Notes: generated by a model not told the origin, from the letters alone. Positions 1 to 26,115 are shown, counted from the stretch's first letter. The stretch is DNA of 64,000 bases from Rebecca billardiae RCC1528 (GCA_965240325.2 OZ251226.1:434001-498000), one strand, 5' to 3'. Translations and numbers: made by a program.

Positions 1-545
1 GCCGGTTCAACGAGCTACAGTACGCGGCAACTGGCGCCACCACGACACGTGCTCGACTCGTACGAGTAACGAGCACGTGGACTGCCGCGTCTACAACCTC
101 GAGCAGCACGTCGAGCGGCTCTTCCGCGGGACTCTGACAGAATGTCGCGCCGGTTGGCGCGGTTTGGCTCCGAGACTTCCGATGCCGGCCAGGTGACCTC
201 CGCCTGACAGAGTAGTCCAGACCGATCGGCGCCGCGCCGGCACGCCCCGCGGCCCCGCGCGAAACGGAAAGACACGACGCCACTGCCCAATCACCGCCCC
301 ACATGGAGCGCAGCGGAGCTCAGGCGCAGCATCGCGGACTAGTACTGCCGTCGCAGCTCCGAGCACGGAGCAGACGAGGCGCGCATCATGATGCGCAAGG
401 GCGCGAAGCCCAAGCAGTTCAGTGATAGTTAATCAGTGACTACGATGACGACGAATGCGGAATGACGTAGTTTACATCCCAAGGCCAAGGCGCGACGTCT
501 GCACGGCACGCGCTTCATGGCTTCAGCTATCCGCACCGCACCTAC
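1..545 (+). pseudogene. Degenerate copy of the 3' part of the sulfotransferase-like gene at 2409-3347
   Basis: Colinear similarity to 3041-3330, e.g. ccggttcaacgagct, ctcgactcgtacgag, gactgccgcgt.tacaacctcgag, gagcggctcttccgcg, gggcgcgaagcccaag. The copy is broken by many short insertions and frameshifts. Its 5' part lies outside the window. Confidence 0.85.
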
Positions 546-4120: not shown

Positions 4121-4190
4121 ACACGATTCGACGCCGCCGGTGCCCGGTGGACAAAGAGCCTCGAGCGCCGCTCGACACGGCTTGGCCATC

Positions 4191-7100
4191 ATGTCCCCTG
4201 CCAGCCTCGTCGGCGAGGAAGTGGTGATCATCGGCAGCGGCGCCCGTGCGCGCGTGAGCGAGTGCATCGGCGATGGCCGTCTCGTGCTTGCTCCGGGCAG
4301 CACGATCCGCGACGTCAGGCCCGACCGCGTGCTCGCGCTGCCCCTCGCGCCCAGCTCCGCGCGGTACTTCAACGAGCACAACCTCGACTTCGACACGCGC
4401 GTCGGCGACGGCTTCGTCGACCCCGGCATCTGGATGTCAAGTGATGCTGCGCTACCCGCGCCAGAGGATCTTGCTCGCCGTCACGCTGGCTCGCCAGGTG
4501 GCTGCGAGGTGCTCGTGGTCGACACGCGCATCGACGCGGCCTTGCGCGACCACATCGAGGTGGCTCGCTCTCGGCTGCAGCCCATCACGGACAAGCGCGA
4601 TCGCATCAAGGTGCTGGGCGCGCACGTGTCCGAGCTGCTCGGGGGCTTTGCGGGCAATCTCGTCGAGGAGTGCAAGCACGACATCTACGCGCTCGTGCAG
4701 GCGAAGGGCTCGATTCTCGTGCCGCTCGGCGAAATCTCGCACGGCGTGTGCCGGCACCGCGCGCTGCTCTTCAAGGTGCTGTGCGACGCGGTGGGCATCG
4801 AGTGCGCGCTGGTGCGCGGCGACTTCGCGGGGAATAGGTCTGCTGGACGGCACGCGTGGAACGTGGTGCACGTCTACGGCAGTGCGCACATCGTCGACGT
4901 GATGCACCGGCCGGGCGAGATCTACCGGCGAGACGACGAAGAGAAGTGTGCGCGCTACCACCGCTTCGCCGAGCGCGGCGCTGGCGGCGCTGCGCAGCAT
5001 CACGGTGCCGGTCTGAACAGCCTGCCCGCGCCAGCGCCGCGTCCGGAGTGGTACGTGCGCCCGGCCGAGGTCGAGATCGAGCGCGGAGCGGATGGCGGTG
5101 AGGTGCTGCTCGGCAGCGGCGGCTTTGGGCGCGTGTACGCGGCGCGGCTTGGGGGCGCGCAGCCGGTCGCAGTGAAGCGGCTGAACGCAGCGGGGTCCCA
5201 AGCGCGCAGCGAGTTTGAGCGCGAGGTGGCGATGCTGCACCAGCTGCGCCACGCGCACATCGTGAGCTTCTACGGCGCGTGCGACGTGCAGGAGAATCTG
5301 ATGATCATCACCGAGCGCATGCGCGGCGGCAGCCTGAGCGACGCACTCGCGATTGAGCCGACGCGCGTGGCGTGGGCGGCGGTCGGGCAGCGGATCGCGC
5401 TGCACGTGGCGTTAGCGCTGCACTACCTGCACACGCTCGAGCCGCCCGTGGTGCACTACGACGTCAAGCCGGCCAACGTGCTCCTCACAGAGGACTACGG
5501 TCTGGCCAAGCTCGCCGACGTGGGGCTGGCGCGCACCAAGTCGCACTCACGCGTGACGGTGCCAGGGTTCACGCTCGCGTTTGCCGCGCCCGAGGTGCTG
5601 CTCGGCCGCCACGCGAGCGAGAAGGCCGACATCTTCAGCGCCGGCGTGCTCGTCGAGGTGCTGCTCACGCAGCAGCAGCCGAACGGGCGGGCGCGCGCTC
5701 GACTGCCAGCCGGCACGCCAGTTGCAGTCCGCCGCCTGCAGGAGCGCTGCCTGCGAGAGGAACCAGTGCTCCGGCCCAGTGCGTCCGAGCTCGTCGTGGC
5801 GCTTGAGGGCGCAGCCCATGCAGCCGATGCGGCTGAGAGGGCGCTTGGTGGCGCGGCGGCGGTGCGCGCCGCTCCGCACATGGCTGCGCAGCCGTCGCTG
5901 CACGAGCCGCCCGTCGCAGTGGCAGGCCCCGCCGCTGCTGCTGTGCTCGGATCGGCAGCGCTGGCAGCAATGGGCTGGGCTGAGCTCTGCGCTGCCATCC
6001 ACACCGCCACGTCCGATCCAGCCACAGCTGAGTGCGCGGTGAGAGTAGCTGCGACGCGGACGCGATCGGAAACCGAAGCTAGGCAGCACGCGGCCGAGGC
6101 GGGCGCGCTCGGCGCGGTGGTGGGCGCGATGCGCGCGCACACGGCGAATGCAGGCGTGCAGGAGCAGGCGTGCCGGGCGCTGGCCAACATCTGCGCTGGC
6201 ACCGATACGGCTGTTGACGCGCGCGAGCAGCAGGCGGCCGAGGCGGGCGCGCTTGGCGCGGTGGTTGGCGCGATGCGCGCGCACACGGCGCACGCGGGCG
6301 TGCTGGAGCAGGCGTGCCGGGCGCTGGTCAACATCTGCGCTGGCACCGATTCGTCTGGCCTCACACGCGAGCAGCAGGCGGCCGAGGCGGGCGCGCTTGG
6401 CGCGGTGGTGGGCGCGATGGGCGCACACACGGCGCACGCGGGCGTGCAGCAGTATGGGTGCTGGACGCTGGTCAACATCTGTGCTGGCACCGATGCGGCT
6501 GGCTACGCGCGCAAGCAGCAGGCGGCCGAGGCGGGCGCGCTTGGCGCGGTGGTGGGCGCGATGGGCACGCACATGGCGCGCGCGGGCGTGCAGGAGCAGG
6601 CGTGCGCAGCGCTGCGCAACATCTGTGATGGCGGCGATGCGGCTGGCCTCGTGCGCAAGCAGCAGGCGGCCGAGGCGGGCGCGCTCGGCGCGGTGGTGGG
6701 CGCGATGGGCGCGCACACGGCACACACAGGCGTGCAGCAGTACGGGTGCTGGGCGCTGCGCAACATCTGCTGGGGCGGCGATGCGGCTGGCGACGCGCGC
6801 AAGCAGCAGGCGGCCGAGGCGGGCGCGCTTGGCGCGGTGGTGGGCGCGATGGGCGCGCACACAGCGCACGCGGGCGTGCAGGAGCAGGCGTGCGCGGCGC
6901 TGCGCAACATCTGTGATGGCGGCGATGCGGCTGGCCTCGCGCGCAAGCAGCAGGCGGCCGAGGCGGGCGCGCTCGGTGCGGTGGTGGGCGCGATGGGCAC
7001 ACACACGGCGCACGCGGGCGTGCAGCAGTACGGGTGCTGGACGCTGGTCAACATCTGTGCTGGCACCGATGCGGCTGGCTACGCGCGCAAGCAGCAGGCG

Positions 7101-10100
7101 GCCGAGTCGGGCGCGCTCGGCGCGGTGGTGGGCGCGTTGGGCACGCACATGGCGCGCGCGGTCGTGCAGGAGCAGGCGTGCGCAGCGCTGCGCAACATCT
7201 GTGATGGCGGCGATGCGGCTGGCCTCGTGCGCAAGCAGCAGGCGGCCGAGGCGGGCGCGCTCGGCGCGGTGGTGGGCGCGATGGGCGCGCACACGGCACA
7301 CACAGGCGTGCAGCAGAACGGGTGCTGGGCGCTGCGCAACATCTGCTGGGGCGGCGATGCGGCTGGCGACGCGCGCAAGCAGCAGGCGGCCGAGGCGGGC
7401 ACACTCGGCGCTGTGTTGAGCGCGATGGGTGCGCACACGGCGCATGCGGGCGTGCAGGAGCAGGCGTGCGCAGCGCTGCGCAACATCTGTGATGGCGGCG
7501 ATGCGGCTGGCCTCGCGCGCAAGCAGCAGGCGGCCGAGGCGGGCGCGCTCGGTGCGGTGGTGGGCGCGATGGGCGCACACACGGCGCACGCGGGCGTGCA
7601 GCAGTATGGGTGCTGGACGCTGGTCAACATCTGCGCTGGCACCGATGCGGCTGGCCTCGCGCGCAAGCAGCAGGCGGCCGAGGTGGGTGTGCTTGGCGCG
7701 GTGGTGGGCGCGATGGGCGCACACACGGCGCACGCGGGCGTGCAGCAGTATGGGTGCTGGACGCTGGTCAACATCTGTGCTGGCACCGATGCGGCTGGCT
7801 ACGCGCGCAAGCAGCAGGTGGCCGAGGCGGGCGCGCTTGGCGCGGTGGTGGGCGCGATGGGCACGCACATGGCGCGCGCGGGCGTGCAGGAGCAGGCGTG
7901 CGCAGCGCTGCGCAACATCTGTGATGGCGGCGATGCGGCTGGCCTCGCGCGCAAGCAGCAGGCGGCCGAGGCGGGCGCGCTCGGCGCGGTGGTGGGCGCG
8001 TTGGGCGCACACACAGCGCACGCGGGCGTGCAGCAGTACGGGTGCTGGACGCTGGTCAACATCTGCGCTGGCACCGATGCGGCTGGCTACGCGCACAAGC
8101 AGCAGGCGGCCGAGGCGGGCGCGCTTGGCGCGGTGGTGGGCGCGATGGATGCGCACACGGCACACACAGGCGTGCAGCAGTATGGGTGCTGGGCGCTGCG
8201 CAACATCTGCTTTGGCGGCGATGCGGCTGGCGAGACGCGCAAGCAGCAGGCGGCCGAGGCGGGCGCGCTCGGCGCGGTGGTGGGCGCGTTGGGCGCGCAC
8301 ACAGCGCACGCGGGCGTGCAGGAGCAGGCGTGCGCGGCGCTGCGCAACATCTGTGATGGCGGCGATGCGGCTGGCCTCGCGCGCAAGCAGCAGGCGGCCA
8401 AGGTGGGTGTGCTTGGCGCGGTGGTGGGCGCGATGGGCGCACACACGGCGCACGCGGGCGTGCAGCAGTACGGGTGCTGGACGCTGGTCAACATCTGCGC
8501 TGGCACCGATGCGGCTGGCTACGCGCACAAGCAGCAGGCGGCCGAGGCGGGCGCGCTTGGCGCGGTGGTGGGCGCGATGGGCACGCACATGGCGCGCGCG
8601 GGCGTGCAGGAGCAGGCGTGCGCAGCGCTGCGCAACATCTGTGATGGCGGCGATGCGGCTGGCCTCGCGCGCAAGCAGCAGGCGGCCAAGGTGGGTGTGC
8701 TTGGCGCGGTGATGGGCGCGATGGGCGCACACACGGCGCACGCGGGCGTGCAGCAGTACGGGTGCTGGACGCTGGTCAACATCTGCGCTGGCACCGATGC
8801 GGCTGGCTACGCGCACAAGCAGCAGGCGGCCGAGGCGGGCGCGCTTGGCGCGGTGGTGGGCGCGATGTGTGCTCACACGGCACACACAGGCGTGCAGCAG
8901 TATGGGTGCTGGGCGCTGCGCAACATCTGCTTTGGCGGCGATGCGGCTGGCGACGCGCGCAAGCAGCAGGCGGCCGAGGCGGGCGCACTCGGCGCGGTGG
9001 TGGGCGCGTTGGGCGCGCACACAGCGCACGCGGGCGTGCAGGAGCAGGCGTGCGCGGCGCTGCGCAACATCTGTGATGGCGGCGATGCGGCTGGCCTCGC
9101 GCGCAAGCAGCAGGCGGCCAAGGTGGGTGTGCTTGGCGCGGTGGTGGGCGCGATGGGTGCGCACACGGCACACACAGGCGTGCAGCAGTATGGGTGCTGG
9201 GCGCTGCGCAACATCTGCTGGGGCGGCGATGCGGCTGGCGAGACGCGCAAGCAGCAGGCGGCCGAGGCGGGCGCGCTTGGCGCGGTGGTGGGCGCGTTGG
9301 GCGCGCACACAGCGCACGCGGGCGTGCAGGAGCAGGCGTGCGCGGCGCTGCGCAACATCTGTGATGGCGGCGATGCGGCTGGCCTCGCGCGCAAGCAGCA
9401 GGCGGCCGAGGCGGGCGCGCTCGGCGCGGTGGTGGGCGCGATGGGCGCGCACACGGCACACACAGGTGTGCAGCAGTATGGGTGCTGGGTGCTGCGCAAC
9501 ATCTGCTGGGGCGGCGATGCGGCTGGCGACGCGCGCAAGCAGCAGGCGGCCGAGGCGGGCGCGCTTGGCGCGGTGGTGGGCGCGATGGGCGCACACACGG
9601 CGCACGCGGGCGTGCAGCAGTACGGGTGCTGGACGCTGGTCAACATCTGCGCTGGCACCGATGCGGCTGGCTACGCGCACAAGCAGCAGGCGGCCGAGGC
9701 GGGCGCGCTTGGCGCGGTGGTGGGCGCGATGTGTGCTTACACGGCACACACAGGCGTGCAGCAGTATGGGTGCTGGGCGCTGCGCAACATCTGCTTGGGC
9801 GGCGATGCGGCTGGCGACGCGCGCAAGCAGCAGGCGGCCGAGGCGGGCGCACTCGGCGCTGTGGTGAGCGCGATGGGTGCGCACACGGCGCACACGGGCG
9901 TGCAGGAGCAGGCGTGCGCAGCGCTGCGCAACATCTGTGATGGCGGCGATGCGGCTGGCCTCGCGCGCAAGCAGCAGGCGGCCGAGGCGGGCGCGCTCGG
10001 CGCGGTGGTGGGCGCGATGGGCGCGCACACGGCACACACAGGTGTGCAGCAGTACGGGTGCTGGGTGCTGCGCAACATCTGCTGGGGCGGCGATGCGGCT

Positions 10101-10376
10101 GGCGACGCGCGCAAGCAGCAGGCGGCCGAGGCGGGCGCGCTTGGCGCGGTGGTGGGCGCGATGGGCGCACACACGGCGCACGCGGGCGTGCAGGAGCAGG
10201 CGTGCATGGCGCTCGTCAACATCTGTGATGGCGGCGATGCGGCTGGCCTCGCGCGCTCGCAGCAGGCGGCGAACGCAGGCGCGCGTGCAATGCTCGTCGC
10301 TGCGCAGGAGGCACACCGCACCTCCGCACTGATCCAGGACCTGTCAGACAGGATGCTGAAGAACCTGAAGCATTAA
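4191..10376 (+). CDS. EDR1/CTR1/ARMC3 peptidase-like domain + TKL-type protein kinase + 29 armadillo repeats; intronless
   Basis: PLGEISHGVCRHRALLFKVLCD and HAWNVV..IVDVM mark the EDR1/CTR1 N-terminal domain. Kinase motifs: LGSGGFG, VAVK, HYDVKPANVLL, LADVGLA, APE, DIFS. ARM-type repeats AEAGALGAVVGAM..H...GVQ..AC.AL.NIC. First ATG at 4191. Confidence 0.9.
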   Translation: MSPASLVGEEVVIIGSGARARVSECIGDGRLVLAPGSTIRDVRPDRVLALPLAPSSARYFNEHNLDFDTRVGDGFVDPGIWMSSDAALPAPEDLARRHAGSPGGCEVLVVDTRIDAALRDHIEVARSRLQPITDKRDRIKVLGAHVSELLGGFAGNLVEECKHDIYALVQAKGSILVPLGEISHGVCRHRALLFKVLCDAVGIECALVRGDFAGNRSAGRHAWNVVHVYGSAHIVDVMHRPGEIYRRDDEEKCARYHRFAERGAGGAAQHHGAGLNSLPAPAPRPEWYVRPAEVEIERGADGGEVLLGSGGFGRVYAARLGGAQPVAVKRLNAAGSQARSEFEREVAMLHQLRHAHIVSFYGACDVQENLMIITERMRGGSLSDALAIEPTRVAWAAVGQRIALHVALALHYLHTLEPPVVHYDVKPANVLLTEDYGLAKLADVGLARTKSHSRVTVPGFTLAFAAPEVLLGRHASEKADIFSAGVLVEVLLTQQQPNGRARARLPAGTPVAVRRLQERCLREEPVLRPSASELVVALEGAAHAADAAERALGGAAAVRAAPHMAAQPSLHEPPVAVAGPAAAAVLGSAALAAMGWAELCAAIHTATSDPATAECAVRVAATRTRSETEARQHAAEAGALGAVVGAMRAHTANAGVQEQACRALANICAGTDTAVDAREQQAAEAGALGAVVGAMRAHTAHAGVLEQACRALVNICAGTDSSGLTREQQAAEAGALGAVVGAMGAHTAHAGVQQYGCWTLVNICAGTDAAGYARKQQAAEAGALGAVVGAMGTHMARAGVQEQACAALRNICDGGDAAGLVRKQQAAEAGALGAVVGAMGAHTAHTGVQQYGCWALRNICWGGDAAGDARKQQAAEAGALGAVVGAMGAHTAHAGVQEQACAALRNICDGGDAAGLARKQQAAEAGALGAVVGAMGTHTAHAGVQQYGCWTLVNICAGTDAAGYARKQQAAESGALGAVVGALGTHMARAVVQEQACAALRNICDGGDAAGLVRKQQAAEAGALGAVVGAMGAHTAHTGVQQNGCWALRNICWGGDAAGDARKQQAAEAGTLGAVLSAMGAHTAHAGVQEQACAALRNICDGGDAAGLARKQQAAEAGALGAVVGAMGAHTAHAGVQQYGCWTLVNICAGTDAAGLARKQQAAEVGVLGAVVGAMGAHTAHAGVQQYGCWTLVNICAGTDAAGYARKQQVAEAGALGAVVGAMGTHMARAGVQEQACAALRNICDGGDAAGLARKQQAAEAGALGAVVGALGAHTAHAGVQQYGCWTLVNICAGTDAAGYAHKQQAAEAGALGAVVGAMDAHTAHTGVQQYGCWALRNICFGGDAAGETRKQQAAEAGALGAVVGALGAHTAHAGVQEQACAALRNICDGGDAAGLARKQQAAKVGVLGAVVGAMGAHTAHAGVQQYGCWTLVNICAGTDAAGYAHKQQAAEAGALGAVVGAMGTHMARAGVQEQACAALRNICDGGDAAGLARKQQAAKVGVLGAVMGAMGAHTAHAGVQQYGCWTLVNICAGTDAAGYAHKQQAAEAGALGAVVGAMCAHTAHTGVQQYGCWALRNICFGGDAAGDARKQQAAEAGALGAVVGALGAHTAHAGVQEQACAALRNICDGGDAAGLARKQQAAKVGVLGAVVGAMGAHTAHTGVQQYGCWALRNICWGGDAAGETRKQQAAEAGALGAVVGALGAHTAHAGVQEQACAALRNICDGGDAAGLARKQQAAEAGALGAVVGAMGAHTAHTGVQQYGCWVLRNICWGGDAAGDARKQQAAEAGALGAVVGAMGAHTAHAGVQQYGCWTLVNICAGTDAAGYAHKQQAAEAGALGAVVGAMCAYTAHTGVQQYGCWALRNICLGGDAAGDARKQQAAEAGALGAVVSAMGAHTAHTGVQEQACAALRNICDGGDAAGLARKQQAAEAGALGAVVGAMGAHTAHTGVQQYGCWVLRNICWGGDAAGDARKQQAAEAGALGAVVGAMGAHTAHAGVQEQACMALVNICDGGDAAGLARSQQAANAGARAMLVAAQEAHRTSALIQDLSDRMLKNLKH
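6084..10259 (+). repeat. Tandem array of 29 x 144 bp (48 aa) near-identical coding repeats
   Basis: Counted unit by unit from the translation; 29 x 144 = 4176 bp fits 6084-10259 exactly, with no indels. Confidence 0.95.
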
Positions 10377-12097: not shown

Positions 12098-15000
12098 ATG
12101 AGCTTCGGCGGCGGGCACCTGCCGCAGCAGGCCAACTTGGCCGCGCTCTTACAGCACGAGACGGAGGTGACGATCGAGCGCAAGCTCGTGCACATCCTCA
12201 CGCTGCCGATCGCGCAGTGGACTGACGTGCAGCGTCGCTTTGCGCTCGCGGTCGTGCGCTCGCTCCCGTGCGACTTGTTCGCCGCGCTCGACGACCGGGC
12301 GATGGAAGCGTTCATCCTGCCGCACCTGCGCGTGCGCGCATTCCACGCCGAGCCGTCGCCCGCGGGCCAGCACGCCCCAACGCTCTCGGCCGCACGCGAG
12401 CTTCCTGGCGCCGAGGCGGAGGCGGCCGCCGTCGACGACGGCTCCGCTGAGCAGCTGCGTGCAGAGGAAGAGCCGCTGCCAGTCGAGGACTCGGGCGCGA
12501 TCGTGCTCCCGGGCGAGCCGCCCGCGGCCGTCTACGTCGTGCTCAACGGCGAGGTCACGCTCGACGAGCCGAAGATCTCGCACGCTGGCTTGTCGCTGGG
12601 CGGCGCGGCCGAGCCGGCTGGCGGTACGGTCGGGTCTGTGGGCGCGCTGCTCGCGACGAGGCGCTTGAAGCGCTGGTCGCAGCAGTCCCGGCGGTCGTCG
12701 CAGACCTCCGCTGGCCCCGAGAAGCCGCAGCGTCCCGCGCCGCCGGGCGCCGCCGAGCAGGCGCTGCCGCCGGACATTCGGCGCGTGCGGCTGCGCGCAG
12801 GCGGCTCGTTTGGCGTGTTCGAGCTGAGCACGTACGAGAACGCGAGCAGCTGCTACGCGTACGTGGAGCCGCAGCCGGGCGCGAGCGGCACGGCCGCCCA
12901 GCCCGCGGCGCCGCCGAGCCAGCCCCGCGCCGCGCCGCGCGCGGCGGTCCTCGAGCTGCCCGCGGCTGCGTTCCGGGCGTCGCCTCTGTTCGCGCTCGTC
13001 TCGGCGCGGATGCGCGAGACGGTGGCGCTGCTCAAGTCGACGGACTTCTTCGGCAGCTGGGACGAGCGCGGGCTCGCGCGGCTGCACTTCGTGATGCACC
13101 GCCGGCTGCTGCAGCCGGGCGAGCTCGCCTTCTCGCAGGGCGACGAGGCCAACGAGTGCTTCGTCATCTGCAAGGGCGCGTGCGCCGTGCTCGTGCGCGC
13201 GTCCAAGTCGGCGTCGCGCCAGGCGGCGCGGCAGCGCGCGGCGAGCCGGGCGCACGCGCGCTCGGACGCCGGCTGCTTCCACAGCACGCACTGGACGCCC
13301 CCGCCCGCGGACGAGGAGGAGGACGACGACACGTTCAGGCGGAGCGGCGACTCTCGTCGGAGCGAGGGCGGGCGCTGGCGCCGCTGGGCGTCGGGCTCAC
13401 TCGACGAGCCGCCGGCGCAGCCGTCCGCGGCCGAGGCGCCCACGCCCCCGGACTCGCCGCGGCTCACCGGCTCGGCCGAGGCGGCGTGGGAGCAGGAGGA
13501 GATCGAGGAGGCGCTCAAGACGGAGTTTGACGTCGCGGAGACGGTGAGCGCCCGCTGCGGAGGGCGCCGGGCGGCTGGCGCGCTGCGCTGGCCCCGCGCG
13601 CGCGCCGCCGGCCCGCGCGCCCACGGCTGCGACTGCTGGGCCTGCCGGCCGGCTGGGTCGCCCTGTGCGGTGCTCGCGCGCGCTCGCCGCGCGCGCCGGC
13701 GGGCCGCTCTCACGCGCGACCTGCGCCCCCGCCGCGGCGCGCGCCAGGCGCGCAAGCTGGCCATTCTCGCCGCGCTGGGCGAGCTCAAGCGCAGCCGGCA
13801 CGCCCGGATGATGAGCGCGGCCACAGCCAGCTTCCGGATCCGGCAGCGGGACGGGCGCAGAAAGAGCCTCGGCGTGCTCAAGCTCGGCGCCGAGGGCGCC
13901 GAGGGCGCCGACGGCTCGGACCAGCCGGCCCCGGGCCAGCCGGCCAGCCCTGCCCGCTGGCTGCGGAAGCTGTCCCTGCTGCCCGAGGACGGCCGGGCCG
14001 CCCCTGGCACCGGCGCCCCGGAGCAGCGGCAGCAGCTGCCGGAGCAGCCGCCGCAGCCGCAGCGTCCCGCGCGCGCGGACGGGGCCGCCAGGAGCGGCGC
14101 CGGCGACTCGGCGGAGTGGAGCTCCGCGGGTGGCGACGGTGGCGCTGAAGGGGCGCGCGAGCAGCGCGAAGCAGGCGGCGCCGCGCCAGGGCGCACGTCA
14201 CAACCCGCCTCGCCCGCGCCGCCGGACGCCACGCCCGCGAGCGCGCCGCGAGCTGCGAGCCCCGCGCCGCCGCAGCCGTCGCAGCTGTCGTCGGCGGCGC
14301 CCTCGTCGGAGCCGCCGATTGCACCGGCGGCGGCGGCGGCACTCCCCGAGCCTCCGCCGCCGCCGCTGACCATGTCCCTGGACACGGACCTCGCCTCCAC
14401 CTCCGCCAGGCTCGAGATGGACATTCTCGTCCGAGCGAGGCTGCCCGATGGGATGCGCGCCCCGCTGGCGGCGGTGCAGGCCGACGGCTCGCCTCGCGCA
14501 CGGCCGGGGGCAGCGGCTGCAGGGGCGACACCGGGCGGCGAGCCTCCGGCCGCGCGCGCGGCGGCGGGGGCTGCCGCCGCACCGGCAGACGAGCCCGCGC
14601 CCGCGCAGGCAGCCACGGCGGACGCCGCCGCGCCGGCCGACGCGTCACCTCGCGCACGGCCAGAGGCGGTGCTGCACGCCTCAGCACCAGGCAGCGCGCC
14701 CGCGCCGGCGGGAGTGGCAGGCGCCGCCGCGCCGGGCGGCGAGCTCGCGGTGGCGCAGGCGGTGGCGGAGGACGCAGCCGCACCGGCCGACGCCTCAGCC
14801 CGCGCACAGCCGGGCGCAGAGGATGCAGCCGCACCGGGCGGCAAGCCCGCGCCCGCGCCCGCGCCGGCGGAGGCAGCGGACGCCGCCTCACCGGCGGCCG
14901 CGGCTGCGGAGAGCGGCGGCGGAGGCAGCCCCCGCCATCTCAGCGCCGGCGCGCCGAGCGCCGCCGCCGCCGCCGCCGCCGCCTCCAGCGAGCCAACCAG

Positions 15001-18000
15001 CCGAGCGGAGAGCCAGGGCGGTGCTGCATACACCGAAGCAGCGGACGGCCCGCGAGCAGCCACCGCGGACGCAAGTGCCGGCGTGCGCTCGGCAGCGAGC
15101 GCCCGCGGGCCCGCGGCCGGCCCATCGCCGAGCGGCGCGGCGGCGCGCGGCGGCGCGCATCGCCGGACCAGCGTGGGTGGGCTCGGCCGCCCCAGCCCGC
15201 ACCGCCGGCCGTCGCTCAGCCCCGGCTGCGGCTCGTCGTCGCTCGTGCCGGCCTCGCCGCAGCGCGCGAGCGTCCGCCGCCCGTCTCTGGCGTCCGCCTC
15301 CGCCTCGCCGCAGCTCGCGGCCGGCCAGCCGCTCGCTCGGCTGTGCCGCCAGGCCTCGGCGAGCTCGATCGGCTCAGGGTCCGAGTGCGCCGCCGCCGCC
15401 GCCGCCGCGGAGGGCGCGGGCGGCGCGGAGGGCGCGTCGGCCATCCTGCACGAGCTGGAGAGCGCCCTGGCCGCGGAGGAGAGCCGCGCGCTCAGCCGCC
15501 GCCCCTCGCGCGACGAGGGCGGCACGACCAGCTTCTCGTTGCGCCGCCGGCCGTCGGTGCCGGAGGAGTCACTCGGGACTCTGCTGCGGCGGCAGCCGTC
15601 GCTCCCGGCGCACCCGAGCGGCGGCGGCCCGGCCCCGCTCGGGCTGCGGCGGCAGTCGTCGATTCCGGCGCAGGGCGGCGGCCCCGTCGTCGCGCTGCGC
15701 CGCCAGACCTCCATCCCGGCCGCGGTGCCGGCCGCTGCCTCGGCGGCGCTCGCGCCGGGGTGCGCCGGCGCGGGCGGCGCGAGCTGGCGCGGAGGCGGCA
15801 GCCGCGGCACTGCCGCGGGCGCTGAGGGCGGCTCGGTGCAGCAGCGCGACGGCGGCATGGCGGCGTTCGAGCCCGCGCAGCCGGGGCTCTCCACCCCACC
15901 GTCGCGCCCCGGCACCGTCGGCCAGCCCGCGCGCCCCGGCAGCGTCGGCCGGCCGTGGTGGGCGGCGCGGCTGAGCCTGAGGCAACTGCTGGAGGCCGAG
16001 CGCGCGGGCGCGGCGCTCGGCGGCGCGGGCGCGGCCGAGGAGGAGGCCGGCGCCGACGAGCTGGGCGGCGGCGGCGTGGTTGCGGGCGTGGGGCTGGCGG
16101 AGGACGTCGCGCTCGCGCAGCGCATGGCGCCGGCGCCCGGCGCGCCCGCGGCCGCGCCGGGTGTGCTCGGCGCCGCCCCGTCGCGCGCGCCGCCGTCCGC
16201 GCCGCCCAGCGCGACGCTGCGCGTGGCGCGCGCGATGCGCGCCGCGGCGCGCGCGGCGACGTGGTTCGGCCGCGACGGCGAGCCGGCGCTCCCGCGCGGC
16301 AGCGCCGTCGGCCCGAAGGGCGGCGTCACCGGCATCGCCGCCGCGGCCAGCGCCGTCGCTTCCTCCGGCCGGCAGGTGGCCACGCTGCTGCCGGGCGCGC
16401 TGGTGGGAGAGATTGCGATGCTCTTCCGAGGCGAGCGGCGCAACGCGAGCATCCGCGCGCTCGAGCGCACCGAGGTGCTGGCGCTCTCGCGCGCGGACTT
16501 CAACGACCTCGAGCCGAGCAGCCTGGAGCTCATCCGCGCGGAGGCGCTGTGGCGGCTCGCGTGCTCCAAGCCGGCGGGGCAGCGCTCGGCCGCCGAGCTC
16601 GGGACGCTGAGCGCGCGCGTCGCCGCCCTTCCCTTCTTCGCAGCGCTGCACCCGGCGGCGTGCCTGGCGCTGTGCCAGGCGATGCACTACCGCAGGGTCG
16701 CCGCGGACGCGATCGTGATGCGCGAGGGCACGCCGCCCAGCTCGATGCTCGTCGTCGTCTCCGGGCAGTGCGCCGTCGCGCGCGACACGGCGAGCGCGAA
16801 CCGGCGCGCGCGCGCGGCGGGCGTGCGCAGCGCGCAGCTGGAGGAGGTGGCGGCCGAGCCCTCGGATGCGGCCGCGCGCGAGCCCGCGCGCGCCGAGCCG
16901 GCCGGCGCGGAGGACACGCACCTCAACCCGTGGACGGGCACCGCGGCGCGCGAGGCGTGGCGCCGCCGCTCCGCCGTCCCGGCGCTCCTCGACCTCGACG
17001 CGCACTTGGCGGCGCGCGCGCGGCGCACGCAGAGCGTGCGCTACGCGCCGCCGGCCGCGCTCGCAAAGTTGATCGGGCAGCGACCCATCTCGCAGCTGTG
17101 GCAGCAGCCGCACGCGGCGCACGCGGCGGCGGCGGGCGCGCACGCGCAGCCGCACGCGCCCGCGCGGCGCCACCGCCGCGCCTCGCAAGGCTTGACGGCG
17201 CAGCGCGCGCGCAAGCTCGCCGCAGCGAGCGGCGGCGCCGGCGGCGGCGCCGGCGGCGCCGACGGCGGCGCGGACGAGCCGGGAGGCCGCGCCGCCGGCG
17301 CCGCCGAGGCCGAGGGCGAGCTCAGCCGCTCGCTCGGCGGCGTCGAGTCCAGCGCGCTGATGGCGTCGCCGGGGCGCGGCGCGGAGGAGGCGACGCGCGC
17401 GCGCCGCCCAGGCTCCGGCGCGCACTCCGCGGCGGGCTCGGCGGGCGGCGGCGACGGCGAGCCAAGCGCAGAGGAGCGCGCGGCGATGGCCGCGACTGAG
17501 CTCGAGGGTGCGATCGCGGGCGGCATGACGCACGCGCTGAGGGAGGAGGAGGGCGGCGGCGCGGACACGGTCGCGCTGCCGGGCGACGCGCTGGGCGAGC
17601 TCTCGCTGCTCCTCCGCGTGCCGCACGACTGCACCGCGCTCGCCACCGAGACAGCCGAGCTATTTGAAATCCCGGCCGAGGCATACGAGGCGGTGCTGAG
17701 GCGCGCGCACCGGCGCGAGCTTGGCGCGCTGCTGGGGCTGCTGGGGCAGAGGGTGGTGCCGCTGAGCCACGTGCCGAGGGCAGAGATCGCGGTGTCGCTG
17801 CCGCTGTTTGGCGGCACGAGCGGCGGCGTCGGCGGCGCGGCCGCGCACGACGCGCACGGCCGCGAGCTCGCGCGCGCGGCCGGCCTCACTGCGGTCGCGC
17901 AGCTCACGGCGGTGGCGTCCGGCGCGGCGGCGGGCGGCGGCGGCGGCGGCGGCGGGCTCGAGCTCGCGCGCCGCACGACGTGCTCGGCGGGCCAGCTCGT

Positions 18001-19786
18001 CGCGTCGTGGGCGCCGATCCGCGCGGCGGCGCGCGCCGCGGCCGAGGCGGGGGCCGGTCTGTTTGGGGCCATCCCCGCGTCCGCGCTGTCCGCCTCGACC
18101 GCCGCGGCCGTCGGCTTTGGGGGCGGCGCGCGCGAGCACGGCACGGCGGCCGAGGCGGACGGCGGCGGCGGCGGCGCGGACGGCGGCGGCGGCGCGCCGA
18201 GCGCCGCCGCCGCCGCCGCCGCCGCCACCGCCGCCGAGGGCCGCGCCGCGCAGCTCTCCGCGCCTCCGAGCGCGCGCGCCTTCTCCCTGTATGCCTTCGT
18301 CATCGAGGCCGGGGAGGTGACGCTCGAGCTGGACCGAGCGCAGCTGCAGGCTCGCGCGGCGGAGCGCACCGCCGCGGCGTACGGGCTGGCGCGGCACGCG
18401 CCACCGCGCGCGGCCGCGGCCGCGCCGGGCGCGGCCGACGGGGGGGCGGCGCTGCCGGAGCACGCCGGGGAGGCAGAGGCGGGCGCTGGCGAGCGCGCCT
18501 CGCGGCGGCAGCGCCGCCGAGGCCGCGAGGGCGCGCGCGAGCGCGGGCCTGCGCGGTGGAGCCTCGAGCTGCTCGACACTTCGCTCTCTCAGGTGCCGGA
18601 CAGCGCCGAGCCGCGCCTGCCCGGCCGGGTCGGTGGCGGCGCGCGCGCCGCGACGGTCGGCTCGCGCGGCGGCGGCGGCGCGCGCGGCGCGCGGCGCGGC
18701 GGCGGCGCGCCCGCCGCGTCGGCGCTCGCCGCGCGCGCCATCACGCTCGGCCGCGGCGAAGTGCTCTGCCTGGAGACGCTCGCGCATCTGCTCGAGCCGC
18801 TGCCGGGCGCGGACGCGCTGCCGCCGGGCGGCGCGGCGCTCGCGCACAGCTTCCGCGCCGGCGGCGCGGCGCGCGGCGCGGCGGTGGCGGCCCACGCGCC
18901 GGCGGGCGGCGGCGACGCCGTCTCGCGCGAGCTGCGCTGGCGGCTGGTGGCGTCGTCCCGCCTCAGCCTGCTGCGCATCCGCCGCGTCGAGTTCCGCGAG
19001 CTCGCCGGGAGCACGGGGCTGCGCGCGCTCGCGGCCGCGCACGCGCGCCGCGCCGACTTCCTCCGCGCCCGCGTCGACGCCGTGCTCGCCGAGCAGCTGG
19101 CCGTCTCCTGGCTGAGCCGAGAGGGCGTGGCGGTGCCGCCGCGCGCGCTCGGCGCCGCGGCGCCGCGCGGCTTGAACGCGCCGGCGCGGCCGGAGCTGCC
19201 GACGCTGACGGGGCCGAGCACGGCGCTGGCGCGCACCGCCGCGCGCCGCGCGCCGTCCGCCGCCGCCGGCGGAGGCGGGAGAAGCACCGCCGAGGCGCCG
19301 GGCCTCCCAACCCTCGCAGACGGCGCGCCGCCGAGCCGGGCGCGCGCCGCCGACGCGCCCGGCTCGGCCGAGACACCCGGCGCGGCTGACTGGCGCGGCG
19401 CGACGCCGGCGCTGCCGCGGCTGCGCATCCCGGAGCGCGCGCTGCTCGGCCTCGAGCGCGTGCCTGAGGTGCGCTGGATGGAGGCGGGCATGGGCCACGC
19501 CGAGGCGGTGCTCCACGCGCACTCGCGCGACGAGGCGGCGGGATACGCCGAGTACGGCGCGCTGCACGAGCGCGGGCTGCAGGAGGCGCAGCGCCGGCGG
19601 AGGCAGGAGGAGGCGGCCGCGCGGCGGCAGCAGCAGCCCAAGCCGCCGCCGCGCACGTTCCCCAAGACGGTCGCGCTCGCGGTCGCCGCGGGGGTGTCCA
19701 TGAACACGGCGGCCAAGCTCCAGGCGCTCCGCAAGGCCAGGGCGGCGGCATCGGAGTCGGCGGCGTCTGCCGCCGCCGCCACTTGA
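12098..19786 (+). CDS. Very large low-complexity protein with several cyclic-nucleotide-binding (cNMP) domains; probable intron 13544-13747
   Basis: cNMP motifs: LQPGELAFSQGDEANECFVICKGAC, LPGALVGEIAMLFRGERRNASIRALERTEVLALSRADF, IVMREGTPPSSMLVVVSG, GDALGELSLLLRVPHDCTALATE. In-frame 204-bp gtgag..ccag intron. Confidence 0.8.
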   Translation: MSFGGGHLPQQANLAALLQHETEVTIERKLVHILTLPIAQWTDVQRRFALAVVRSLPCDLFAALDDRAMEAFILPHLRVRAFHAEPSPAGQHAPTLSAARELPGAEAEAAAVDDGSAEQLRAEEEPLPVEDSGAIVLPGEPPAAVYVVLNGEVTLDEPKISHAGLSLGGAAEPAGGTVGSVGALLATRRLKRWSQQSRRSSQTSAGPEKPQRPAPPGAAEQALPPDIRRVRLRAGGSFGVFELSTYENASSCYAYVEPQPGASGTAAQPAAPPSQPRAAPRAAVLELPAAAFRASPLFALVSARMRETVALLKSTDFFGSWDERGLARLHFVMHRRLLQPGELAFSQGDEANECFVICKGACAVLVRASKSASRQAARQRAASRAHARSDAGCFHSTHWTPPPADEEEDDDTFRRSGDSRRSEGGRWRRWASGSLDEPPAQPSAAEAPTPPDSPRLTGSAEAAWEQEEIEEALKTEFDVAETVSARCGGRRAAGALRWPRARAAGPRAHGCDCWACRPAGSPCAVLARARRARRRAALTRDLRPRRGARQARKLAILAALGELKRSRHARMMSAATASFRIRQRDGRRKSLGVLKLGAEGAEGADGSDQPAPGQPASPARWLRKLSLLPEDGRAAPGTGAPEQRQQLPEQPPQPQRPARADGAARSGAGDSAEWSSAGGDGGAEGAREQREAGGAAPGRTSQPASPAPPDATPASAPRAASPAPPQPSQLSSAAPSSEPPIAPAAAAALPEPPPPPLTMSLDTDLASTSARLEMDILVRARLPDGMRAPLAAVQADGSPRARPGAAAAGATPGGEPPAARAAAGAAAAPADEPAPAQAATADAAAPADASPRARPEAVLHASAPGSAPAPAGVAGAAAPGGELAVAQAVAEDAAAPADASARAQPGAEDAAAPGGKPAPAPAPAEAADAASPAAAAAESGGGGSPRHLSAGAPSAAAAAAAASSEPTSRAESQGGAAYTEAADGPRAATADASAGVRSAASARGPAAGPSPSGAAARGGAHRRTSVGGLGRPSPHRRPSLSPGCGSSSLVPASPQRASVRRPSLASASASPQLAAGQPLARLCRQASASSIGSGSECAAAAAAAEGAGGAEGASAILHELESALAAEESRALSRRPSRDEGGTTSFSLRRRPSVPEESLGTLLRRQPSLPAHPSGGGPAPLGLRRQSSIPAQGGGPVVALRRQTSIPAAVPAAASAALAPGCAGAGGASWRGGGSRGTAAGAEGGSVQQRDGGMAAFEPAQPGLSTPPSRPGTVGQPARPGSVGRPWWAARLSLRQLLEAERAGAALGGAGAAEEEAGADELGGGGVVAGVGLAEDVALAQRMAPAPGAPAAAPGVLGAAPSRAPPSAPPSATLRVARAMRAAARAATWFGRDGEPALPRGSAVGPKGGVTGIAAAASAVASSGRQVATLLPGALVGEIAMLFRGERRNASIRALERTEVLALSRADFNDLEPSSLELIRAEALWRLACSKPAGQRSAAELGTLSARVAALPFFAALHPAACLALCQAMHYRRVAADAIVMREGTPPSSMLVVVSGQCAVARDTASANRRARAAGVRSAQLEEVAAEPSDAAAREPARAEPAGAEDTHLNPWTGTAAREAWRRRSAVPALLDLDAHLAARARRTQSVRYAPPAALAKLIGQRPISQLWQQPHAAHAAAAGAHAQPHAPARRHRRASQGLTAQRARKLAAASGGAGGGAGGADGGADEPGGRAAGAAEAEGELSRSLGGVESSALMASPGRGAEEATRARRPGSGAHSAAGSAGGGDGEPSAEERAAMAATELEGAIAGGMTHALREEEGGGADTVALPGDALGELSLLLRVPHDCTALATETAELFEIPAEAYEAVLRRAHRRELGALLGLLGQRVVPLSHVPRAEIAVSLPLFGGTSGGVGGAAAHDAHGRELARAAGLTAVAQLTAVASGAAAGGGGGGGGLELARRTTCSAGQLVASWAPIRAAARAAAEAGAGLFGAIPASALSASTAAAVGFGGGAREHGTAAEADGGGGGADGGGGAPSAAAAAAAATAAEGRAAQLSAPPSARAFSLYAFVIEAGEVTLELDRAQLQARAAERTAAAYGLARHAPPRAAAAAPGAADGGAALPEHAGEAEAGAGERASRRQRRRGREGARERGPARWSLELLDTSLSQVPDSAEPRLPGRVGGGARAATVGSRGGGGARGARRGGGAPAASALAARAITLGRGEVLCLETLAHLLEPLPGADALPPGGAALAHSFRAGGAARGAAVAAHAPAGGGDAVSRELRWRLVASSRLSLLRIRRVEFRELAGSTGLRALAAAHARRADFLRARVDAVLAEQLAVSWLSREGVAVPPRALGAAAPRGLNAPARPELPTLTGPSTALARTAARRAPSAAAGGGGRSTAEAPGLPTLADGAPPSRARAADAPGSAETPGAADWRGATPALPRLRIPERALLGLERVPEVRWMEAGMGHAEAVLHAHSRDEAAGYAEYGALHERGLQEAQRRRRQEEAAARRQQQPKPPPRTFPKTVALAVAAGVSMNTAAKLQALRKARAAASESAASAAAAT

Positions 19787-21673: not shown

Positions 21674-22037
21674 GGCCGCGGTCAACAGCCCTGCCCTTCC
21701 GGCTTCCACCGGCCCGGGCGGCGTCGGAGGCTCGGAGCAGAAGAACTGCGTCTCCGGATAAAGGATTAAAGGTCCAAGCCCAGACCGCAGCGGCAAGGAC
21801 CAGTCCGGGGGCGGACGAGATAGTCTGATATTCGTCCAGGCCCGGACCGATCACAAAGCATTGAAAACATCCGGACTCTATTCAAACGATTCCTGAGATT
21901 CTGCCCACGAACAATCGCGCGGCTTTCGGCGGCGGCGGCACGAACGAGCCGCTCTCACTGGTCATTCGCCGCTTGGTGCCGGAGATCACCAAGCGGGATC
22001 CGCACAGCCAACGACGGGGCTCCCGCGGGAGGTGCCC

Positions 22038-25000
22038 ATGACGAGGGAAAGCGGCGGCGGGAGCGCCGTGGCGCTGCTCGCGCTGTTGGGCGGCGCGGTG
22101 GGCGCCGGGGCACGGCCGCCGTGCGTCACGCTCACCTCGGGCGCGCGACATACGTGCGCCTCGGCGTGCGCCAGCGGCGATCTCATCGCCTGCTGGGGCG
22201 CCAACGAGCGCGCGCAGTCGTCTGTGCCCTCGCTGGGCAAGCGCCTGCTGCACGCGAGCGCGGGCGAGGCGCACACGTGCGCCACGACGGCGGACGGGGA
22301 AGGGTACTGCTGGGGCGACAACTCGCGCGGCCAGCTCGGCCTCGGCCTGCTCGCGCCGCACGTCGGCGACGCGGCGCGCGCACCGGTGATGCTCGGCCGC
22401 ACGCGCGGCGCGGCGCCTCCGCCGCCCGCCCACGCCGCGTCGCACTGCGACCGGCATGCGTCGGGCTGGTGGCTCACGGAGGCATGCAAGCGGGAGCACG
22501 CCCTCATGCAGCCGAGGCCGCCCACCGGCCCGCCGATGCGCATCGTCGCCATCTTTGCGGGCTCGCAGCACACGTGTGCGCTCGGCGTCGACGGCGCGGT
22601 CAAATGTTTCGGCAGCGGCTCGAAGGGGCAGCTGGGGTACGGCGACCGCACGTCGCGCGGCATGAGCGCGGACACGATGGGCGACGCCCTCCCCGAGGTC
22701 GAGCTCGGCGCGGGGCGCACCGCCAAGGCGCTCGCCCTCGGGCGCGAGCACACGTGCGCGGCGGTGCGCGACAGCGGCGCCGGTGACGGCTTGGCTGCCG
22801 ACGCGCCGCCGAATCAGGTGCTGTGCTGGGGCGCGGCGATGAACGGCCGACTGGGGCTGGGCGACTCGCGCCACCGCGGCGATGTGCCCGGCACGATGGG
22901 CGACGCGCTCGCGCCCGTCGACCTCGGCTCGCGCGGCGGGCGCGGGCGCATCGACCAGCTGGTCGCAGGCGCAAGACACATGTGTGCGCTTGTCTCCTCG
23001 GCGCATCCGCCCGTGTCTGCGCGGCGCGGCGCGGGGCGCGAGGGGGCGGGCGCGGACGCGCGCGACTCGCACAGTCGGAGCCGACGGCGCTCGCGCTCAC
23101 GCCGTCGAGGCGGTGCCGACGACGACGACGACGAGGCCGCCGCCTCCGCCTCCGCTGCCGCCGTCGGCGCCTCCTCCGCTCCTCCGCCCAGTGACGGGGG
23201 CTCAGTGCTGTGCTGGGGCTGGGGCAAGCACGGCCAGCTGGGCTACGGTGCGCGCCGCCGCCGCGGGAGTGCCGCGCGCGCGCCTCCCTCGCGCGCGCGC
23301 GCGCTCTCGCGCCGCGCCCTGGCGCGCACGCCTTTTCACACGCACGCGCCCTTGCCCTGCGCGCGCGCGCGTTTGCTGTGCACGCCTGCGCTGCCGCCAC
23401 TGCCCCGCTGCTGCCCTGCTGCTGCCGCCGCGCTCCACCCCGTCGCAGGCGACGACGAGGACCGCGGCGAGACGTCCGCCTCGATGGGCGACGCCCTGCC
23501 CGCAGTCGACCTGGGCGAGGGCGCGCTCGCCCTCGCGATCGCAGTCGGCGACGAGCACACGTGCGCTATCGTGCAGCGGGCGGCGGCGCCGGGCGCGGCG
23601 GCGGCGCCGCCGCCGAGCGCAGTGTGCTGGGGCGCGCAGGGCTCGCGCCAGCTGGGCGTCGAGGTGCCGCGGGGCTCGCTGCGCCAGGACGTCGGCGACC
23701 AGCCGCACCAGATGGGCGAGCTGATCGAGCCCGTGCCGCTGCGCCTCGCCGCGACGCCGGCGATCAGCGCGGGCGGCAAATTCAGCTGCGCCGCGCTCGA
23801 GGCCGGGCGCGCGGATGCGTCTACGGCGGCGGCGGCGCACGTTGCGTGCTGGGGCGCGTCGACGGGCGGCGCGCTCGGCGACAAGTCGCGGCTCTCGCGC
23901 TCGCACTCGCACCTGCCGCTCACGCGCGAGCACGTGGACACGCGCAGCGCGAGCATCGGGCCGCTGCTCCAGATCGACATGAGCGCACTCGAGGCGCTGC
24001 CGACGCTCTCCGCTCACGCGGGCGGCTCGGCCGGCGGCGCGCGGAGCGGTGGGGACGGCGCGCGCCGAGCGGTGGGGACGCCGGCGCCGGCGCCGGCGCT
24101 GACGCCGGCGCCGGCGCCGGCGCCGGCGCCGTCACCGAGCTCGCGTGGCCCAGGTGGAGGGAGGAGGCGAGGTCGGCCGCGCCGCTCCCGCGCCTCGCCG
24201 CCGCCTGCCGCGTCGTCGCCGCCGCCGCCACCGCCGCTGCTGATGCCGCCGCCCTCGCCGGCGCCGCCGCTGCAGCCGTCCCTGCTGGCGCTTCTGCTAG
24301 GCCAGCAGCTGCCGCCGCCGCCGCCGAGCTCGCCACCGCCCGCCGCCGCGTGGCCGAGCGTGCCGCTGGTGGGGGCGGGTCGAAAGGGCACGACACAGCG
24401 CTACTGGCCAAGCCCTCCGCCGCCGCCGCCCTCGCCGCGCCGAGGCCGCGCGCGCCGCGGCTCGGGCGGGGCCGAGCGCCCCTCGCCCTCGCCCTCGCCC
24501 GCGCCCTCGCCCGTGCCGCAGCCCGCGCGGCGCGGCTCGTGGCGAGACGCGGTGAACCTCGAGTGCTACGAGGACAACCAGGCGCACGACTACCGCGGCC
24601 ACGTCTCGGTCACGGCGCGCGGCCTGCCGTGCCAGCGCTGGACGGCTGTGCTGCCTCACAAGCCGCACTTCACGCCCGAGCGGGTGCGCGCGCTCGGGGC
24701 CCGCGGGCGCGGTGGGGCCGTCCCGCGCGCGCGCCGCCACACCGCCCGCCCTCGGCTCACCCGCCCCGCCACCGCGCCGCCGCGCGTGCGCCCGCGCCCT
24801 TTCCGCGCCGCGCGCCGGCTCCGGGCCCTCAGTACCCGGACCGTGGGCTGGGCGACCACAACTACTGCCGCGCCCCCGGCCGGTACTCCTACTGCGCCTG
24901 GTGCGTGGGAGCACGCAGCATCGCCGGCCGCGCGGAACCCGAGCGGCCGCGCGCGCCGCGCGCACCGCCGCCACGCGAGCCCCCGCTCACTTGACCCCCC

Positions 25001-26115
25001 GCCCTGGCTGGCTCCGCGCGGCGGACCGGCCCGGCCCGCCACCGCCGCGCGGCTGTGTGCGCGCCCCCTCCGCCCCCTCGCGCCTCGTGTGTGCGCGTGC
25101 GGCCGTGTGTGTGTGCGCGCGCGTGCGCAGGTGCTACACGACAAACCCCGGCGTCGAGTGGGACTGCTGCGACGTGGGCATGCCCGCGGACAGGTGCATC
25201 TGGTTCCCCTCGCCGCCGCCGCCGCCGTCGCTCCCGCCCTACTCGCCGCCGCCCTCGCCGCGCCCGTCGCCGCCGCCGCCGATCCCGATGCCGCCCGCGC
25301 CGCCCGTGCACCTGAAGGACCCGGAGTGCTACACGCACTACCAGGCGCGCGACTACCGCGGCCGCGTGAACAGCACCTCGCGCGGCTTCACGTGCCAGCA
25401 GTGGACGGCGCAGGCGCCGCACGCGCACAGCTACGACCCGGCGGCATACGCCGCGTACGGCATCGGCAACCACAACTACTGCCGCGCCGCGGGCTCGTTC
25501 TGCGCGTGGTGCTACACGCAGCACGAGGGCAAGCCGGAGTGGGACTGCTGTGACATCGGCCCGCCGTCCGACTTCTGCGAGATCATCTCGCTGCACGAGG
25601 ACCGAGGCCCGCACGGCGCGCTGCCGCCGCGCACGGTGCCGAGGCCCATCGCGCCCGCGTGGGCGACGAGCGCCCCGTGGCTCGGCAGCGCGCTGCTGCT
25701 CGGCGTCACGGTCGGGCTCGCGATCGCGCTCGCCGCGCTGCGGCGCGCGCGGCGCGGCGCGGCGACGCCGCTGCCGACCAGCGTGCCCGAGCTGCTGGAG
25801 CCCACGCCGAACCGGCGCGCGCGGCACAACGGTGGCACTACGCGGCAAGCGCGCGGCGCGAGCGTGGCGGGCCGTGAGCTGCCGGCGCGCTCGAGCGGCG
25901 GCGCGGGGGGCGCGGCCAAGCCCGAGCCGCACCGTGCGAGCGGCGCGGGGCTCGCGCGGCCGCCGGCCGCGGCGCCGCGCCCAGCAGCTGCGGCAGCATC
26001 ACCGGCCCCTCTGAGACCGCCAGCGAGCGCGCCGCCGACACCCGCCCCGGCCGGGGCGACCGCTCGTCGCAGCCGCTATGAGGACGCGAGCTACCTCGCA
26101 TCGCCCATGCTGTGA
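22038..26115 (+). CDS. Type I membrane protein: signal peptide, RCC1/BLIP-II repeats, Pro-rich stalk, two kringle domains, TM; exons 22038-23247, 23449-24683, 24833-24900, 25131-26115
   Basis: RCC1-like AGxxHTCA...CWG.N..GQLG repeats. Kringles ECY...DYRGHVSVTARGLPCQRW...HNYCRAP...WCYT and ECY..DYRGRVNSTSRGFTCQQW..HNYCR..WCYT. Three GT..AG introns join the frames. TM LGSALLLGVTVGLAIALAAL. Confidence 0.85.

Follow-up and report, generated by a model that had tools for sequence, protein, structure and literature searches.

A 29-unit armadillo array of three unit types behind an EDR1-like kinase in the haptophyte Rebecca billardiae, a candidate modular peptide-docking domain

Fungal receptors for immunity and allorecognition are characterised by arrays of highly conserved tandem repeats whose binding face diversifies: in their NLR proteins the repeats (ANK, TPR and WD, with the HET-E/D/R NWD family among them) are near-identical along the array and share a scaffold that evolves in concert (PMC4986451, PMC12222747). 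We describe here a repeat array of comparable pattern at the end of a kinase gene in Rebecca billardiae RCC1528, found in a window of 64,000 nucleotides (GCA_965240325.2 OZ251226.1:434001–498000, which is C8:434001–498000 in our contig numbering of the 72-Mb, 41-contig assembly; ‘the window’ always means this whole stretch). The 6.2-kb frame of the gene is intact and intron-less, and encodes an EDR1-type domain and a kinase followed by some 1,430 amino acids (aa) of armadillo (ARM) array and cap. As in the fungal receptors, the number and order of units vary between close paralogues, several head–tail combinations occur in the family, and it is on the predicted binding face that positions vary, with pairwise ratios of replacement to synonymous change (dN/dS) above 1. 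Unlike them, the window protein has no NACHT or NB-ARC domain but an EDR1 domain and a kinase as its head, its repeats are of the ARM type which is absent from the fungal NLRs in that survey (PMC4986451), and two of its three helix-3 types are invariant within the array. With these differences noted, the parallel drawn between the two kinds of repeats in an earlier reading of the window made from its sequence alone (hereafter the original prediction) is apt (PMC4986451), and the fungal repeats are the nearest counterpart in behaviour.

Several other described systems share parts of this architecture. Plant CTR1/EDR1 Raf-like MAPKKKs also have an N-terminal PF14381 domain followed by a TKL kinase, and CTR1 is among the best solved matches, but the plant kinases are of the RD type and the protein ends at the kinase, whereas the window protein has a non-RD kinase with the ARM array after it. 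The animal protein ARMC3, set alongside here by its Pfam description, combines ARM repeats and a PF14381 domain in one protein as the window protein does, hence its place in the name of the Pfam family; its ARM repeats are N-terminal and diverged, and to our knowledge it has neither a kinase nor an array of high internal conservation. Importin-α and the designed ARM proteins (5AEI, 5MFM) have the same W-x-x-x-N motif on helix 3, modular geometry and inter-repeat pockets, though the groove of the window array is predicted, its units are of 48 rather than 42 aa and number 29 rather than 4–10, one of its types (B) has no Trp, and the groove is aromatic and of mixed charge where theirs is acidic. 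LRRK2/ROCO and MLKL-type kinases likewise join an ARM solenoid and a kinase in one polypeptide, but with another domain order and other partners, and with ARM domains that are diverged rather than near-identical. The ROCO–leucine-rich repeat (LRR) and NB-ARC–TPR candidate receptors of Ectocarpus (PMC3341825) are comparable as a lineage-specific algal family with shuffled repeats and signs of diversifying selection; there, exon shuffling moves one repeat per exon around a GTPase or NB-ARC core, whereas the window gene is a single exon with a kinase core and an array probably remodelled by unequal crossing-over.

We propose, with a probability of about 0.55, that the array acts as a modular domain for docking or sensing peptides and is coupled to the kinase, in a concertedly evolving, lineage-specific family. 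The genome has about ten paralogues of the EDR1-kinase head, carrying ARM or LRR tails, among them the tandem ARM-tail genes C37a and C37b to which we refer below (paralogues are named after their contigs; see Table 1). The anatomy of the gene and its evolutionary pattern are real and unusual, and the array in the window is the longest of the ARM family.

Tandem Repeats Finder reports one array at 6083–10284 (period 144, 29.2 copies, 85% matches, 0% indels, score 5875), and 144-bp steps from position 6084 divide it into 29 in-frame 48-aa units followed by a degenerate cap, which bears out the 29 indel-free units at 6084–10259 recorded in the original prediction. All 29 units are distinct in DNA, with a mean pairwise identity of 80% in amino acids (82% for units 3–28) and 88% in DNA, and divergence is greatest in the edge units 1, 2 and 29, as unequal crossing-over would lead one to expect. 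Independent typing by helix 3 reproduced exactly the three types and the order predicted for units 3–28 (ABCBABCBAABACBABACBCBCACBC), with units of the same type differing at 1–14 of the 144 bases and units of different types at 15–31. One helix-3 peptide is common to 8/8 A units and another to 10/10 B units, and the C units have five variants differing at positions 28, 32 and 38. The description of the array as a shuffled three-letter code is unsupported or at least overstated, as the invariance of the A and B peptides within the 29-unit array points to purifying selection.

The order of the units also gives little to such a code. It had been claimed that two B or two C units never stand side by side, and this absence is real when compared with random permutation (P about 5e-4), but it is not robust to block duplication: arrays grown from ABCB by tandem duplication of random blocks have no BB or CC in 1–16% of runs (P 0.01–0.16), and this outcome always arises if the duplicated blocks are even-sized (P 1.0). 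As the rule is weak under duplication models and the sister array of C37b has three units of the EQ helix-3 class consecutively, we do not take it as evidence for a code. The further claim that linker variants recombine between types holds in part. Linker positions 45–47 are tied to the helix-3 type in 25 of the 26 core units (Y with A, L with B, and D or E with C, with MAR in B only), but KVGV crosses between types and, like Leu16 and Thr18, is common to more than one of them. A nucleic-acid reader of the TALE, PUF or PPR type is unlikely, as both Pfam and the fold search give ARM and the array has a net charge of −11 over its 1392 aa.

The ARM array linked to a kinase is confirmed by Pfam, which finds PF14381, Pkinase and Arm in the one protein, with the Arm profile PF00514 matching six separate stretches within units 1–10. 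An AlphaFold model of units 3–10 (pLDDT 91, pTM 0.89), for which the input alignment consisted of other stretches of the same array and the C37 arrays, has three helices per 48 aa. The top Foldseek matches of this model are designed ARM proteins with (KR)n peptides (E about 3e-11, probability 1.00, TM about 0.65–0.8), and the best sequence matches of the array are designed ARM proteins followed by importin-α. Our mapping of the groove uses helix periodicity and the alignment to 5AEI, in which W31, Y/Q28 and N35 of the unit correspond to W33, E30 and N37, and positions 34 and 38 to S36 and S40. In importin-α, the helix-3 Asn holds the backbone of the peptide. The W-x-x-x-N motif is present on helix 3 of all A and C units, and the B units have Ala for Trp and keep the Asn. 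In designed ARM proteins, the peptide site has E30 and W33 on its surface (PMC4756613), and each side-chain pocket lies between two neighbouring modules, the central helix 3 serving both (PMC11228518; bioRxiv 10.64898/2026.03.18.712636).

The positions that define the three types (27, 28, 29, 31, 32, 34, 38 and 40) are on helix 3 and the loop which follows, with one further type-covarying position in the following helix 1, while positions 30, 33, 36, 37 and 39 are invariant, an alternation expected of a helix with one face exposed and a buried core. In the arrays of C37, C24, C11 and C1, which are independent of this one, hypervariability again falls on the type-defining positions. The variable residues around the conserved Asn line up with positions at which designed ARM proteins contact the peptide, in keeping with what had been predicted for them.

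Nei–Gojobori pairwise estimates by region gave helix-3 dN/dS values of 3.8 (A vs B), 1.6 (A vs C) and 1.5 (B vs C), compared with 0.19–0.37 for the scaffold (range over the three type pairs), and values of 4.3 for helix 3 and 0.51 for the scaffold among the C37a/b units with 0.34 between the C37a and C37b heads, where each comparison is based on one or two synonymous differences and the pairs are non-independent. Differences in the linker are replacements, with hardly any synonymous ones. Codons with at least 30% non-major residues cluster in positions 27–40 (P 2.7e-4 for the window array and 0.017 for the C37 arrays), and replacements are concentrated on the predicted groove, as the original prediction had them. 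This concentration is firm, whereas positive selection between unit types is no more than suggested. Within types A and B, helix-3 dN is 0 and pS, the proportion of synonymous differences, is 0.05–0.11; since helix 3 of these types is invariant despite synonymous variation, the ‘letters’ are conserved modules, and we read the helix-3 modules of the window array as conserved rather than diversifying.

The array is a recombinational mosaic, as had been proposed. Its longest exact self-match is 170 bp and its near-identical blocks are of 401 bp at most and span no more than two or three units; the clearest pair, units 3.4–6.2 and 7.4–10.2, differs by 6 mismatches in 401 bp and represents an old ABCB duplication. 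A simple higher-order repeat is rejected as a full account by these short matches and the mosaic structure. All four gametes are found for 168 of the 741 informative site pairs, giving a minimum of 6 recombination events within the unit frame, and the four-substitution KVGV haplotype common to A units 17 and 19 and C unit 22 is difficult to account for unless exchange has taken place. Distances in the scaffold are 0.05 within an array and 0.15 between the window and C37 arrays irrespective of class, and helix-3 distance tracks the QY or EQ class even across arrays, which indicates that the scaffold is homogenised in each array and that the helix-3 classes are older.

The comparison of unit number and order across paralogues which the original prediction called for reveals strong differences, with 29, 17, 13, about 9, 7 and 5 units per array. 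The heads of C37a and C37b are 98.0% identical, yet their 13 and 17 units are in a different order, with the first and the last three helix-3 types alone in common and 16 helix-3 types among the 30 units. In this family, remodelling is therefore much faster in the arrays than in the heads. In the paralogue on C11 (near C11:601548, − strand) we noted a TGA at the Trp31 codon of the last ARM unit with the loss of the last helix 3 and C-cap, and this copy may be a pseudogene or truncated allele.

The kinase of the window protein has ScRIPK, FERONIA, CTR1, BAK1 and TAK1 as its closest solved relatives. Its HYD motif aligns opposite the YRD of ScRIPK, an RD kinase, and it is therefore a non-RD kinase; it retains the Lys of VAVK, the catalytic Asp and Asn, DVG and APE, lacks the Arg of HRD, and is apparently catalytically active. 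The domain before the kinase, which also has a weak Transglut_core match in the Pfam scan, belongs to a papain/transglutaminase-like family that is frequently fused to kinases (PMC10318531), and no NACHT, NB-ARC or other NTPase or oligomerisation module was found in the 653-aa head in the same scan. The N-terminal peptide starting at Met 4191 is common to all paralogues, and the codon-position GC content of the coding sequence (0.78/0.55/0.86) fits coding sequence in a GC-rich alga. The protein is presumably cytosolic because it has no recognisable membrane-targeting domain.

Outside R. billardiae, the head has its nearest relatives in Pavlovales sp. CCMP2436 (55% identity); the next ones are from a prasinophyte and, in plants, SIS8, EDR1 and CTR1. 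Such a ranking agrees with a haptophyte, probably a pavlovophyte, as the source. The EDR1-kinase-ARM architecture was not found in a word-indexed search of 5.8 billion proteins restricted to 1143–3636 aa, nor among the scanned best 150 HMMER hits from 1.84 billion representatives (with P0134, of 6833 aa, excluded), and a metagenome scan with the kinase–array junction gave distant ARM proteins only. Related ARM arrays in environmental and protist proteins are joined to MLKL_N and a kinase (P0138), a caspase (P0140), an LRR-Roc-kinase or ROCO core (P0145), or a kinase alone (P0148).

We suggest that helix 3 of each three-helix, 48-aa unit would hold an extended peptide by means of its W-x-x-x-N motif, with pockets formed between neighbouring units, and that three conserved module types would make the groove a fixed mosaic of three pocket chemistries. 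Docking or sensing of an extended polypeptide by the array would then recruit or regulate the kinase. Unequal crossing-over and short-tract gene conversion would let the array grow and be reordered, and would keep the scaffold of each array homogeneous without erasing the helix-3 classes; across the family, one EDR1-kinase head is combined with an ARM or an LRR tail, and sister arrays diversify quickly. While the anatomy, fold, site pattern, mosaic structure and family are shown, we infer that the array binds a peptide, that binding is coupled to the kinase and that it has any role as a sensor; such a role is plausible.

A number of points weigh against this proposal. Counts of distinct changes give odds ratios of about 2.5 (Fisher p 0.34 and 0.19), so that the helix-3 replacement excess is not significant by this measure, and the pairwise dN/dS values have the small synonymous counts given above. 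Peptide binding in the groove is predicted from homology of the fold and motif, and type B has no Trp. The mean unit identity of 80% is below the threshold used for high-conservation repeats in fungi, which is at least 85% over at least 100 aa (PMC4986451), and as the protein has no NTPase either, it falls outside the NLR class. Recurrent CpG change or hypermutation could inflate the four-gamete signal. Finally, by analogy with the ARM domains of LRRK2-like kinases, the array may be mainly structural or autoregulatory.

The more ambitious proposal made for this gene is that it encodes an intracellular immune or non-self receptor in which the ARM array has been diversified by recombination for variable pathogen or conspecific peptides and signals via the kinase, and we regard this as possible but rather unlikely. 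It draws on the fungal NLR-like combination of internal conservation, repeat-number differences between paralogues, concerted evolution and binding-face variation (PMC4986451), on the presence of one head with either ARM or LRR tails, on the fusion of related ARM arrays to MLKL_N and kinase, caspase and ROCO domains, and on the algal precedent for shuffled repeat receptors (PMC3341825). It would also suit the non-RD kinase, as this is a feature of plant pattern-recognition receptors, but these are receptor kinases that usually have Cys or Gly before the catalytic Asp (PMC3411088), and the residue in the window kinase is Tyr. The invariant A and B helix-3 peptides indicate purifying selection rather than ongoing diversification, and no NOD or other oligomerisation module is found by Pfam.

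A further point in its favour is the third gene of the C37 cluster, where we observed a different, helical head followed by a kinase on the same ARM scaffold as in C37a/b. This head (L012:6925–7380, +) is modelled as four long helices (pLDDT 80) with Pfam matches to Rx_N (E 0.017) and MLKL_N (E 0.1) that are both sub-threshold, and the potato Rx coiled-coil is only at rank 28 in Foldseek; BLASTP against an MLKL_N-kinase-ARM protein gave no match, and we do not assign it as an MLKL or Rx-type head. Taken with the ARM-array fusions in other organisms, this helical head makes a sensing or death-signalling context plausible, on circumstantial grounds. One could go further and imagine a form of NLR-independent recognition in pavlovophytes, in which EDR1-kinase and helical-bundle-kinase heads are combined with ARM solenoids of high internal conservation, groove modules are recombined by unequal crossing-over, extended peptides are read module by module with phosphorylation as the output, and the 29-unit gene is the largest member; this we consider doubtful.

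Alternatively, the array might be a structural, scaffolding or autoinhibitory solenoid, with the types being an accident of an amplified ancestral ABCB and having no separate ligand specificities. The ABCB ABCB order of units 3–10, in which 395 of 401 bases match, the lack of BB and CC in 1–16% of block-duplication runs and in all those with even-sized blocks, the non-significant event-count tests for positive selection and the numerous kinase-ARM and SAM-ARM genes elsewhere in the genome with ordinary diverged arrays could all be explained in this way. However, replacements between types fall on the predicted groove face and not at random, the helix-3 classes are kept in arrays that have each homogenised their scaffold independently, and helix 3 of each type is conserved against synonymous drift, and we find this explanation unlikely. 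An assembly artefact or part of a dead gene is highly improbable: tandem arrays are easily mis-assembled and a stop codon interrupts the last unit of the C11 paralogue, but in the window gene the frame is intact with start, caps and stop conserved, codon-position GC and purifying selection on the scaffold make a coding pattern, and the distinct units, the longest exact match of 170 bp and the contiguity of this long-read grade assembly make mis-assembly unlikely.

The fungal evolutionary pattern, if it is the one seen here on ARM repeats, would hold for one more type of repeat, another output domain (a CTR1/EDR1-type kinase) and, in a haptophyte, another eukaryotic supergroup, and natural arrays of a few discrete, conserved ARM modules are relevant to the engineering of modular peptide binders. 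Were the array only a scaffold, it would still be a clean case of concerted evolution in a coding tandem array.

Table 1. Features of the EDR1-kinase-ARM gene, its neighbours and its paralogues (positions are those of the window unless a contig or unit is given).
Feature	Position	Strand	Basis or remark
EDR1-kinase-ARM coding sequence, complete, single exon, 2061 aa + stop	4191..10376	+	Open frame 4140–10376; first Met 4191
EDR1/CTR1/ARMC3 peptidase-like (papain/transglutaminase-like) domain	4356..4922	+	PF14381, E 9.4e-31, residues 73–261 of frame from 4140
TKL-type Ser/Thr protein kinase domain, non-RD (HYD), DVG replacing DFG	5106..5795	+	PF00069 E 3.6e-40; PF07714 E 5.7e-35
Ala/Pro-rich linker and N-terminal cap before array	5796..6083	+	Translation; cap motif also precedes paralogue arrays
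Units 1–2, diverged edge units, EQ class with A-like loop	6084..6371	+	16–30 bases from all other units
Units 3–28, core array, three types (8 A, 10 B, 8 C)	6372..10115	+	Pfam Arm E 7.6e-43 on units 1–10; AlphaFold units 3–10
Unit 29, edge unit, B-like with Met31 and Val34	10116..10259	+	Unit cutting and typing
Degenerate C-terminal capping repeat and stop codon	10260..10376	+	Similar cap closes C1 and C37 paralogues
Helix 2	Unit positions 8–18		AlphaFold model
Helix 3	Unit positions 23–36		AlphaFold model
Loop	Unit positions 37–41		AlphaFold model
Helix 1	Unit position 42 to position 5 of next unit		AlphaFold model
Neighbouring frame, fn3 or purple-acid-phosphatase N-domain	568–2589	−	
Neighbouring frame, 2562 aa, cyclic-nucleotide-binding domain	12098–19786	+	DNA ~80% GC
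Neighbouring frame, RCC1 repeats and weak Kringle match	22032–25553	+	
Neighbouring frame, ephrin-receptor-like repeats	27676–31845	−	
ARM-tail paralogue, window gene	C8		29 units
ARM-tail paralogues C37a and C37b, tandem genes	C37 (cluster C37:253000–271000)		13 and 17 units
ARM-tail paralogue	C24		About 9 units, diverged
ARM-tail paralogue	C11		7 units
ARM-tail paralogue	C1		5 units
RNI-type LRR-tail paralogues, EDR1-kinase head kept	C15:977500–996499 (two genes), C5:45000–54999, C39:314500–324499		GC-rich introns in tail

The neighbouring long frames are unrelated to the EDR1-kinase-ARM gene, which is therefore a singleton in the window and not clustered. We note that an antisense open frame of 1589 aa (5547–10316, −) spans the array, has no domain support and is best explained as a by-product of a stop-poor, GC-rich repeat. 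In Pavlovales sp. CCMP2436 (GCA_026770615.1) the relatives of the head are annotated as proteins of 536–630 aa, with an LRR-like stretch after one of them (L020) and long N runs after both; these N runs 3′ of the heads suggest that the gene models are probably truncated at collapsed repeats. Elsewhere in the R. billardiae genome, distant ARM tails with ordinary diverged arrays follow RD-type N-terminal kinases at C15:956k, C25:887k and C15:1238k, and others accompany a SAM domain at C35:533k and C5:1285k; a TIR-like N-terminus suspected by eye in the C5 SAM-ARM gene was dropped as Pfam gave no TIR match. Among the LRR-tail paralogues, the C15:985k copy and the C5:45k copy have 980-aa frames with hardly any difference between them, as a recent segmental duplication might have left them.

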